The notes beneath the pieces are model-generated. The model had not been told where the DNA came from, made no database searches, and saw only the letters and a program-made list of their open reading frames with translations. A DNA stretch of 64,000 bases, taken from NCBI RefSeq assembly GCF_000315625.1, contig NW_005434471.1, positions 8,669 to 72,668 of the forward strand. Reading direction: 5' to 3'. Positions within the stretch are counted from its first letter, which is position 1, and every line of letters starts with the position of its first letter. The position numbers and the translations under genes are program-made. Below, piece after piece: positions 36,421 to 40,009 of this stretch. Origin of the DNA: Guillardia theta CCMP2712 (Eukaryota > Protista > Cryptophyta).

Positions 36421-36476
36421 CGTGCTTCCCTGCCCTCGCTCTCGTCTCCCTGCTGTCAGTAGCCGTCAACCTTGCC

Positions 36477-37283
36477 ATGTCCTGGACGGACAGCATCGTC
36501 CCCTACCTCCTTGCAACAGGCCCCTGCACCCTCGTCGAGATCGGACAACGAGTCCCCAGGCCTGCGTCAGAGAGTCGGCAGCTGTCTGCTGTAGTCAGAT
36601 CAGATCCTCGGCTTGTGATATCGCCTGAGGGGCTGGTGTCAGTCAGAAGCGTCACGGCAGGGAGAGAAGGAGGGGCGCAGCTGGTACCAGTGGCGACGGC
36701 TATCGGAGGAGGAGGAAGGAGGGGACGAAGCGGTGCTTCGACAGCGGCTTCAAGGCATACTGCCATGTCCTGGACGGACAGCATCGTCCCCTACCTCCTT
36801 GCAACAGGCCCCTGCACCCTTGGCGAGCTTGGCTCTAGAGTCCCCAGGCCTGCGTCAGAGAGTCGGCAGCTGTCTGCTGTAGTCAGATCAGATCCTCGGC
36901 TTGTGATATCGCCTGAGGGGCTGGTGTCAGTCAGAAGCGTCACGGCAGGGAGCGAAGGAGGGGTGCAGCTGGTTCTAGAACAGAATGGCGTAAGCCAACC
37001 AGTGGCGACGGCTATCGGAGGAGGAGGAAGGAGGGGACGAAGCGGTGCTTCGACAACGGCTTCAAGGCATACTGCCATGTCCTGGACGGACAGCATCGTC
37101 CCCTACCTCCTTGCAACAGGCCCCTGCACCCTTGGCGAGCTTGGCTCTAGAGTCCCCAGGCCTGCGTCAGAGAGTCGGCAGCTGTCTGCTGTAGTCAGAT
37201 CAGATCCTCGGCTTGTGATATCGCCTGAGGGGCTGGTGTCAGTCAGAAGCGTCACGGCAGGGAGCGAAGGAGGGGCGCAGCTG
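36477..37283 (+). repeat. Three near-identical in-frame coding repeats (units start 36477, 36765, 37077)
   Basis: [19 protein letters not shown]...[21 protein letters not shown] three times; DNA nearly identical including synonymous sites. Confidence 0.97.
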
Positions 37284-40009
37284 GCTGCAAGAGGAGGAGC
37301 AGCACCGGGACAGAGGGTTAGCAGAGGACAAGGAGCTTCAGGCCCTGGCGCTCCAGGCGTTGATGCAGAGATGAATGACAACGAAGAGGAGTCAGCTGGA
37401 ACTAGAGCTTGGGATGATAAACAGATGCTCGAGGATATGCACGGGGTTTGGATCGACGAGAACGTTTGCCGGCTCCACAAGGACGAGCTGGGAAGACCGA
37501 AGGGATACGCGAAGGAGAAAGTTACGTGCGTGGTGACGATCAAACGCTTGAGTGGAGATCCGGTGCACCTGCTGGGGCTGTCGCTCAAGTCCGACGCGTT
37601 GGAGTTGATGGAGGGCGTCATGGAGCCTCCCCCGGCCCTTGCTCAAGGAGACTGTGTGCAGTTGGACGTGGAATTCCTGCCGCAGGTATGCTGACGCGCG
37701 TCAAGGTGAGGGGAGATGACGGGATGCGAGCAGGTGTACGGGCTTCTTGTTGGGGTCTTGGACTTCAACTTCTCCATCGGCCAGGACGAGAAATTCACCA
37801 TCTCCCGCAACGTGTCCTTGCGCTGCTGCCATGCCGACGAGATGAACCTTTTGGGCAGCCGGTACGAGCCCAAGCCATCCGTGTCCCTTCCTCAAGGAGT
37901 CGTGGCCTACACGGAGTTCCCTCCAAGCTCCTCGCACTTTGTTATTCGCCTAGAGGCTAACGAGAAGGCGATCGTGCGCGAGCTGGAGCAACTGACGAGA
38001 GAGCAGCTGAACGTCGTCTTACTCACCCTCAGGGCCCAGCTGCCAACCACCTACTATGCCTTCTTCTCTCGCCTCGTCACTCTTGAGCACATCGCCAGCT
38101 GCAAGAAGGTCACCAAGGAAGGCTACTTTGCGAACGCGATGCTGCAAGCCGAAGGCAATCTCCATGCTCTCTTCATCGATGGGCTGGCAGAGCGGAGGCC
38201 GTCGATCATGCGAGGAGATAGCGTCCAAGTTTGGCATGACCCCCAGGAGAAGTACAGGGGGTACGTGCAAGCCGTGCGGAGAGACAGCGTGTTGCTCAAG
38301 TTCCCCAAGCAGTTCATGTCGCTGTACAGCAAGAGAGAGAGACTGGACCTCTTCTTCGAGCCCAACACTTACAGCGTTAGGATGCATCTCCAATGCCTCC
38401 GCCTCTCCCACGATTATTGTGAAAACCTCTTTCCTGCTCTTGCCGACAAAGAAAGGGAGGGTGAAGAGTTTGTAGAAGAGTCGTTTCAGCCCTTCAACTC
38501 CAACCTCAACGCCGAACAGACGCATGCAGTGGGTCGTATCTTCCACCATGTTCTTTATTCCGCCTCGGTCTCTCCCTACATCGTCTTCGGACCTCCTGGT
38601 TGTCTTGCCTTGCTTCTCTTGTGTTCTCTGACAGCCCCTTCATGCTCCAGGCACTGGAAAGTCTGTCACGGTCGTGGAAGCCATTCTCCAGCTGTACTTC
38701 AACTCCGACGTCAACATACTTGCTTGCGCACCCTCCAACTCAGCTGCTGATCTTCTCGTCCAGCGTCTGAGCAACTCGCTCGGCACCCAGACGATGTTCC
38801 GACACATGGCTTCTACTCGGCAGGTTGAGGAGATCTCCAGCACGGTTCTCAGCTACAGCAACTACAACGAAGAAAACGAGCGATTTGAGTTCCCTGGCTT
38901 GTCAAACTTCATGGACTATCGCGTCGTCGTCTCGACCTGCAACGCAGCTATGGCGCTGTACAACCATGGCGTGCATAGAAATCACTTTGACGTCGTGTTC
39001 ATGGACGAGGCTGGCACAGCCCATGAGGTGGAGGCTGCTGGCGCTGCTTGTGCTCTCCTGGGCAGGTCAGGCAAGTTGGTGCTGGCAGGAGACCCCAAGC
39101 AGCTGGGGCCTGTCGTCCTCTCTGAGCCCGCCAGTCAGAATGGACTGTCCGTCTCTCTGCTGGAGCGACTCATGGAGCATGATCTGTACCAGCTGAAAAA
39201 CGGAGAGTTCGACCCCAGTCACGTCACTATGCTGCAAAGAAACTATCGATCTCACCCTGCCATCATCAAGTTCCCCAGCGATCGATTCTACCTCGGCAAG
39301 CTCACGGCGCATGGCGATGAGCGGCAGGTGATGTCGTTGGCTGACTGGGAGCACCTGCCGTGCAGGGGCTTCCCCATCATCGTCAAGTGCGTGGAGGGCA
39401 TCAACGAGCAGGAGGAGTCCAGCCCCTCCTGGTTCAACACGACTGAGTGTCTGGAGGTGGTCAACTACATCCAGCTGCTCCTCTCGAGCCGGCCAGACGT
39501 GCTGCCGTCAGACATCGGGGTCATCAGCCCATACGATAGGCAGGTGAAGAAGATACGGCAGCTGATCACCAGTAAGAACATCCCGCAAGGGGAGCTGGGA
39601 ATTAAGGTCAACCGTCGCGTGTTAAGACTGCTGTCCGGTCTGATTCTCAGCTGCAGGTTGGCACTACCGAGCTGTTCCAGGGCCTTGAGAGGCGCGTCAT
39701 TATCATCTCCACCGTCCGCAGCGACCCCTTGCTCCTTCAGTCTGACGACCGCTTCAACCTGGGCTTCGTCAACTCGGCCAAGAGGTAACATGCCAGTGCC
39801 TCTGCCAACGGCCAGCTGAGCCTGAGGGTCGTGACACGTGGGGCAGGTTCAACGTGGCAGTGACGAGGGCGCAGTGCCTGATGATAGTCATCGGAAACCT
39901 CAAGTGCCTGGCCAAGGACAGCTTGTGGAAGGACTTCTTGACCTACTGCAACGACCATGGGGCTCTTATCTCTGATCGCAGCAACCATGACAGATGCTGT
40001 ATCCTGTAG
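36477..40009 (+). CDS. MOV10/SDE3/Armitage-like superfamily 1 RNA helicase with three N-terminal tandem winged-helix-like repeats
   Basis: PYIVFGPPG|[91 protein letters not shown]. Upstream [13 protein letters not shown] is typical of MOV10/SDE3. Confidence 0.92.

Follow-up and report, generated by a model that had tools for sequence, protein, structure and literature searches.

LOTUS (OST-HTH) domains are small winged helices that are used in tandem in proteins such as MARF1/Limkain b1, TDRD5, TDRD7, Oskar and Tejas. In MARF1 and TDRD5/7, these arrays are thought to act as multivalent recognition modules. A survey of the OST-HTH domain described tandem repeats as well as proteins in which the domain is fused to RNA-binding domains (CCCH among them) or to a U-box, a RING or a ubiquitin-like domain; in its text a helicase is named for Vasa only, and its architecture section contains neither a helicase fusion nor a 2H fusion (PMC2848206). 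The Arabidopsis protein AtC3H18 combines LOTUS, CCCH and RRM domains in one protein (PMC9335048). The helicases MOV10, MOV10L1, Armitage and SDE3 have in common a MOV-10 beta-barrel followed by an AAA_11/AAA_12 core with intact motifs. Here, we describe a gene in a 64,000-nucleotide stretch of the genome of the cryptophyte Guillardia theta CCMP2712 (assembly GCF_000315625.1, contig NW_005434471.1, positions 8,669 to 72,668 of the forward strand; hereafter the window) that encodes a helicase with this same arrangement. Unlike the helicases named above, however, the G. theta protein carries an N-terminal tandem array of winged-helix units on linkers rich in arginine-glycine (RG) dipeptides, which was seen in no other match. 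The units share with LOTUS domains a small winged-helix topology, the use in tandem and the partner types CCCH, U-box and ubiquitin-like folds, but the units and the helicase here form a single polypeptide, whereas the action of LOTUS proteins on helicases takes place in trans. We read the locus, with a probability of roughly 0.6, as an expressed MOV10/SDE3-type helicase in which a young winged-helix array would serve as a recognition module for RNA or ribonucleoproteins (RNPs). This is a known kind of helicase in a modest new variant, with a domain family that is unnamed in current libraries.

The helicase gene is spliced and transcribed

In our spliced model, the helicase gene occupies positions 36477-40009 of the window on the + strand and consists of five exons that encode a product of 1106 amino acids (aa; Table 1). 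The gene is spliced and transcribed: an RNA contig of 2689 nt, found in runs X2 and X4 from two studies, extends from 37246 at the end of the third unit to beyond the stop codon and carries all four exon joints. The first exon encodes the three winged-helix units with their two RG-rich linkers, a tail that is acidic and rich in Gly, Ala and Arg, and the beginning of the helicase N-terminal region, and the open reading frame (ORF) containing the repeats spans 36477-37694. A first-pass annotation of the window, made by a model from the letters of the DNA and a list of its ORFs, had placed an intron near 37686-37732 and had allowed that the repeat exon might not be joined to the helicase exons. 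That intron is present, with a true end at 37733, and the gene has three more. Since exon 1 holds the repeats together with ~110 residues from the start of the helicase N-terminal region, the worry about an unspliced repeat exon falls away, and the RNA contigs confirm that this exon is spliced to the rest of the helicase.

The public gene model of this locus is badly truncated. GUITHDRAFT_158951 (315 aa), found by a word search, equals residues 792-1106 of our model with identical exon 3-4-5 joins, and begins at an internal Met (aa 792), covering 38964-40009 of the window. Walker A, the MOV-10 barrel and the entire array are among the 791 residues that it lacks. Our model thus corrects a record in which 315 of the 1106 residues have been annotated so far. 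An exact look-up of the ORF products with one unit (205 aa) and with three units (405 aa) matched no record.

Assignment of the product to the MOV10/SDE3 family

Pfam searches with the spliced product identified the MOV-10 beta-barrel (PF21634) at E 1.2e-15 (57 bits, against a cut-off of 23.6), AAA_11 at E 1.9e-21 and AAA_12 at E 1.4e-25; in a six-frame scan of the genome, the beta-barrel was found at this locus at E 1.2e-14 (59.8 bits). Helicase motifs I, II (DEAG), III, IV, V and VI (VAVTRAQ) can all be read intact after splicing. Among named proteins, helicase MOV-10, Mov10l1, mov-10-B.2 and SDE3 come closest, at 38-47% identity (candidates of 175-556 aa), and relatives in the PDB by sequence are IGHMBP2 (6e-26), UPF1 (3e-18) and also Sen1. 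We accept from these comparisons that the protein belongs, as the first-pass annotation had proposed, to the MOV10/SDE3 family of UPF1-like superfamily 1B (SF1B) helicases; the closest relatives among these candidates are of the MOV10 type and not UPF1, SETX or IGHMBP2. Searches of metagenome contigs with the helicase and with alignment A1 found no relatives.

The closest orthologue fragment is a Hanusia phi protein in EukProt (P0053), with 69% identity. This fragment reads through the equivalent of intron 3 and loses the frame thereafter, probably because its source was a transcript that had not been spliced.

A young array of near-identical units

The units are about 58 aa long, and their copies are spaced by 288 and 312 nt at the DNA level (Table 1). 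Tandem Repeats Finder described the array by a period of 312 with 99% matches and a score of 1184, far above chance. Unit 1 differs from units 2 and 3 at 10-11 nt, nine of which lie within the 17 nt of 36533-36549. In this patch, seven consecutive codons are altered, three of them synonymously, which gives VEIGQR in unit 1 and GELGSR in the other two; outside it, the units are about 99.5% identical. The clustered differences look like a replaced patch instead of gradual divergence, and the patch resembles a conversion tract whose source copy has since been lost. Judged by this near-identity, the copies are very young. They would have originated by a very recent in-frame tandem duplication of a unit of 288-321 nt that included the original start codon. 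Each linker has one 10-aa core with either one or two RG dipeptides, and RGG triplets are lacking; the linkers are RG-rich without being a classical RGG box.

Three near-identical units with a shared 10-aa linker core ahead of an intact MOV10-type helicase had been noticed in the first reading of the window, as had the VEIGQR/GELGSR difference as the main distinction of unit 1, and the ORF, the DNA repeats and the Pfam matches agree with this. The description of the module as freshly triplicated holds for its recency, on account of the near-identical copies, but not for the exact number three, given the one-unit DNA form and the linker variant described below. The further idea that the array is amplifying under conflict is unsupported: because the copies are almost identical, there is no sign of diversifying selection.

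Three types of data give three states of the array: three units in the reference, one unit in a DNA contig, and a linker variant in RNA contigs. In both RNA studies, a contig of 351 nt spans 36934-37275: it enters at the end of a unit, crosses linker 2 and covers a whole unit. The RNA contigs show a unit with linker sequence on either side. The 351-nt contig starts and ends with the same 30-mer, which makes it a cycle of 321 nt at k = 31, and its depth relative to the helicase body is 3.7x in X2 and 2.2x in X4. As this contig is cyclic and has raised depth, more than one unit is transcribed in the X2 and X4 cultures. It also contains nine added bases, AGGAGAGCA, after 37039, which lengthen the 10-aa linker core to 13 aa; this variant was not found anywhere in the reference assembly.

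Table 1. Features of the G. theta helicase gene, in positions of the window
Feature	Position	Strand	Description
Exon 1	36477..37685	+	aa 1-403; splice donor at 37686 seen in RNA contigs of X2 and X4
Winged-helix unit 1 (VEIGQR variant)	36477..36650	+	aa 1-58, from the first ATG; family profile E 9e-16
Linker 1	36681-36764	+	84 nt; 10-aa core at 36705..36734 (aa 77-86)
Winged-helix unit 2 (GELGSR variant)	36765..36938	+	aa 97-154; profile match, AlphaFold2 model
Linker 2	36969-37076	+	108 nt, 24-nt insertion relative to linker 1; 10-aa core at 37017..37046 (aa 181-190)
Winged-helix unit 3	37077..37250	+	aa 201-258; 1 of 204 nt different from unit 2
Intron 1	37686..37733	+	48 nt, GT..AG; absent from RNA contigs of X2 and X4
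Exon 2	37734..38598	+	aa 404-692; MOV10-type N-terminal domains and first half of Walker A
MOV-10 beta-barrel	38145-38348	+	PF21634, within exon 2
Intron 2	38599..38650	+	52 nt, GT..AG; interrupts Walker A (GPPG/TGKS); RNA joint
Exon 3	38651..39606	+	helicase core: Walker A, DEAG (39004-39015), motifs III-V
Intron 3	39607..39656	+	50 nt, GT..AG; RNA contigs
Exon 4	39657..39784	+	helicase motif V region; Pfam AAA_12; agrees with public protein P0036
Intron 4	39785..39846	+	62 nt, GT..AG; RNA contigs
Exon 5	39847..40009	+	motif VI (VAVTRAQ), C-terminus, TAG stop

A winged-helix family without a Pfam entry

The G. theta genome holds four copies of the unit, three in the array and one at 46-50% identity on another contig (C146:7612-10761, minus strand; ORFs 1042-2019 and 229-981 of that stretch). 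The gene on C146 has a single unit, and its second exon, reached in frame across a canonical intron of about 60 nt (GTGAGT..TTCAG), encodes an AKAP7-type 2H phosphoesterase (2',5' RNA ligase-like; PF10469, E 1.1e-25). An apparent fifth genome copy (L005, E 0.6) was rejected as low-complexity sequence.

To find the family more widely, a profile of the four G. theta copies was searched against 1.84 billion representative proteins. At a threshold of E <= 1e-3 there were 29 matches, 28 of them true; the other one (P0023), which consists of fibronectin type III repeats, was discarded as a false positive. Local iteration brought the family to 76 domain copies in 30 proteins, i.e., the 28 true matches and two G. 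theta proteins, with 1-5 copies per protein and 2-5 tandem copies in most. The family consensus in alignment A2 reads xxWRxxIxxxLxxxGxxxxLxxLGxxVPRPxxxxxxxKLxxVLxxDxRF. Four proteins (P0005, P0008, P0009 and P0011) join two units each to CCCH zinc fingers (zf-CCCH), as AtC3H18 joins LOTUS to CCCH, although Pfam does not identify their units as LOTUS. A U-box is found in P0013 and a PB1 domain in P0018. All ten of the family matches that were looked up are metagenome or run-assembly proteins without an informative name.

No Pfam family fits the unit, and the 68 aligned copies gave no convincing Pfam match. The family profile produced chance matches only among PDB sequences (e.g., antibody chains), and a word search with the unit as part of the 403-aa exon-1 product returned nothing at E <= 10 among proteins of 222-705 aa. 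The unit belongs, on these comparisons, to a small winged-helix family that has no Pfam entry. What is new is a domain family that recurs as tandem arrays beside RNA-binding and ubiquitin modules and that current libraries do not name.

One family member, P0002, combines two units with a long coiled Ala/Glu-rich tail and is encoded on an ENA metagenome scaffold (8471 nt of sequence). Its gene lies within a row of four tightly packed genes on the same strand, with no Pfam match in any of them. This layout is unusual for a eukaryote, and the scaffold might come from a giant virus or a compact genome.

The fold of the unit was modelled with AlphaFold2, using unit 2 and an alignment of 68 rows. 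The model has a predicted local distance difference test score (pLDDT) of 89.1 and a predicted template modelling score (pTM) of 0.70. Its elements are helix 3-14, a short strand at 17-18, helices 19-25 and 36-42 and strands 46-48 and 53-56, i.e., the topology H-b-H-H-b-b. The unit is thus confidently predicted to be a minimal winged helix, in line with the helix-helix-helix-hairpin pattern that had been read from the protein letters. A Foldseek search with the unit model returned only winged helices, all at E >= 0.14, and an exhaustive structure aligner gave a plateau of ties. Among the latter (aligner values in brackets, Z first) were the MarR family (7.6, 2.3, 56), TDRD5 LOTUS (7.2, 1.8, 58), Egalitarian (6.9, 2.0, 59) and Tejas LOTUS (6.5, 2.4, 58). 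In the ESM Atlas, the best structural match is a domain of chlorophyte nucleoplasmin-like proteins (template modelling score, TM, 0.80; root-mean-square deviation 1.3). Searched by features, the same atlas pointed only weakly (0.88) to an RNase R winged helix and to small bacterial proteins without names.

Unit number, binding partners and kinship

Several observations weigh against our reading of the locus. In the DNA run X1, a contig of 9426 nt joins 36472 to 37073 and omits exactly 600 nt (288 + 312), which leaves one unit of the GELGSR type, and there is no separate linker contig from this run. The RNA contigs stop short of unit 1 and the 5' flank. None of the 29 profile matches contains a helicase, and the helicase fusion is thus without comparative support. 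The unit is close to charge-neutral, and winged helices also mediate protein contacts, for example in the cullin WHB domain. The X1 contig would be expected if the three-unit array were an assembly artefact and the real gene had one unit, and the linker variant that is missing from the reference shows that the reference is inexact. We nevertheless regard such an artefact as quite improbable. De Bruijn contigs are able to lose loops, so the one-unit contig is not proof, and the cyclic RNA contig of two studies, with its raised depth, implies more than one unit. Furthermore, a one-unit locus could not have given rise to the reference by a simple artefact, since a single unit would not yield two distinct linkers of 84 and 108 nt and the distinct patch of unit 1. 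We take the array to be real and very young, with a length that either varies between cultures or was assembled imperfectly; the exact number of three units is not secure. On another reading, the units are protein-protein or self-association modules, for docking, oligomerisation or granule scaffolding, and do not bind nucleic acids. The near-neutral charge agrees with this, as do the cullin and APC2 WHB domains among the structural neighbours of the unit and the U-box and PB1 partners in the family, which are protein-interaction or ubiquitin modules; in addition, eLOTUS domains are reported to bind Vasa protein (PMC5458760). On the other hand, the enzyme partners in G. theta (helicase and 2H phosphoesterase) and the CCCH partners elsewhere point to RNA substrates, and we consider a purely protein-binding role rather unlikely.

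The first-pass annotation had likened the unit to LOTUS winged helices; the winged-helix fold stands, but the specific kinship does not follow from our comparisons. If the unit were a highly divergent true OST-HTH/LOTUS domain, the protein would be a single-chain LOTUS-helicase whose units, like known LOTUS domains, bind G-rich RNA or regulate a helicase. An hhalign comparison of the new family with a LOTUS profile points in this direction: it scored 16.6 (P 0.0048), with 45 columns aligned in the register expected from structure, above the maximum of 20 column-shuffled controls (11.0), the reversed profile (9.5), MarR (13.8 over 15 columns) and HARE-HTH (10.6, from a profile of three sequences). 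The tandem arrays and the fusions to CCCH, U-box and ubiquitin-like domains likewise parallel published OST-HTH architectures (PMC2848206, PMC9335048). However, the hhalign probability is only 7%, LOTUS against MarR already scores 13.6 (P 0.03), which places the background between winged-helix families close by, and the LOTUS profile is mostly bacterial, being made of 57 sequences that comprise 56 bacterial PF12872 matches from three phyla and the G. theta LOTUS. Comparisons with the single G. theta LOTUS and with a LOTUS alignment of 12 rows gave no informative hhalign signal, a word search for relatives of LOTUS brought back its own query alone, and no sequences of the RNase R winged helix, meant to serve as a control family, turned up in the genomes sampled. 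PF12872 itself matches none of the 68 family copies at E <= 10, and in the six-frame genome scan it misses the array locus but finds a genuine LOTUS on contig C22. The VPRP loop and the D-x-R-F wing motif of the unit differ from the LOTUS profile. By structure, Oskar LOTUS ranks 47th in Foldseek with a TM of 0.39, and in the exhaustive alignment MarR and Z-alpha equal or exceed LOTUS in Z. LOTUS thus comes out as the best of the families tested by a small margin and homology is not established; the parallel in architecture is stronger than the profile signal. The LOTUS label describes a reasonable resemblance that is unproven, and true LOTUS descent is possible, with the odds leaning somewhat against it. 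A further reading takes the unit for a Z-alpha-like sensor of Z-RNA or Z-DNA and the protein, accordingly, for an antiviral sensor-helicase. Z-alpha domains (ADAR1, ZBP1, PKZ, E3L) have two hallmarks: an Asn/Tyr that is conserved in the third helix, and a wing containing Pro-Pro-x-Trp. These defining contact residues are absent from the conserved positions in alignment A2, which keeps W3, VPRP, KL, D43 and R45-F. Z-alpha identity of the unit is therefore unlikely by its conservation pattern, and we find an antiviral sensor of this kind hardly credible.

The LOTUS domain of G. theta mentioned above is of Pfam grade and lies on the minus strand of C22:525210-528419 (1483-2673 of that stretch). 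The exon that encodes it is apparently the final one of an acidic protein whose N-terminus is nucleoplasmin-like and which has long stretches of acidic and of basic residues. A nucleoplasmin-like context would be common to this LOTUS domain and to the best structural match of the unit in the ESM Atlas, from Chlorophyta.

Proposed role of the array

We propose that the protein is a 5'-3' SF1B RNA helicase of the MOV10/SDE3 family with an N-terminal tandem array of ~58-aa winged helices. The array would allow multivalent recognition of RNA or RNP partners and may deliver the 5'-3' helicase to its substrates, and the RG-rich linkers may be flexible spacers that possibly contact RNA. The RNA/RNP-binding role is suggested because the partner domains in the family match three architectural themes published for OST-HTH (PMC2848206).

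A bolder version of this proposal, which we regard as doubtful, is that the unit represents an undescribed eukaryotic LOTUS-like branch of RNA/RNP-binding domains, that an array of this kind is here built into a helicase for the first time, and that the number of units shifts fast between cultures and thereby tunes valency. If true, the LOTUS-helicase partnership that is known in trans from animal germ granules would here be fused into one chain. Should the domain prove to be related to LOTUS, the connection between LOTUS and helicases would reach beyond animals, within a single polypeptide. A young array of variable length would also offer a natural series in which to follow the effect of recognition-module valency on a helicase.

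Silencing partners and other helicases in the genome

The first-pass annotation had further taken the protein for a silencing factor and had suggested a genome survey for paralogues and for Argonaute, Dicer and RNA-dependent RNA polymerase (RdRP). This survey recovered the extra unit copy on C146, but Piwi, RdRP and Dicer_dimer domains were not found in the six-frame genome scan, in which exon-by-exon matching may miss divergent genes of this intron-bearing genome. The reading as a silencing factor is thus unsupported and, compared with MOV10/SDE3 systems, the usual silencing partners may be missing here. A literature search for Argonaute in Guillardia gave nothing usable. The same scan detected one RNase III domain and one PAZ-like match below threshold (E 1e-4), the latter in an ORF of 883 aa (1458-4109 of C54:417500-423500). 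This ORF has no Piwi match and is not Argonaute-like by PDB sequence; its sole PDB match, to RQC2, is weak. Nothing in our data supports an Argonaute-based pathway. The apparent lack of Argonaute in the genome raises the question of what role a MOV10-type helicase plays without it.

The six-frame scan also gave a second, weaker match to the MOV-10 beta-barrel (C43:178602-178841, minus strand, E 9.4e-5). It lies in an open frame of 1964 aa that may encode another MOV10- or HELZ-like helicase.

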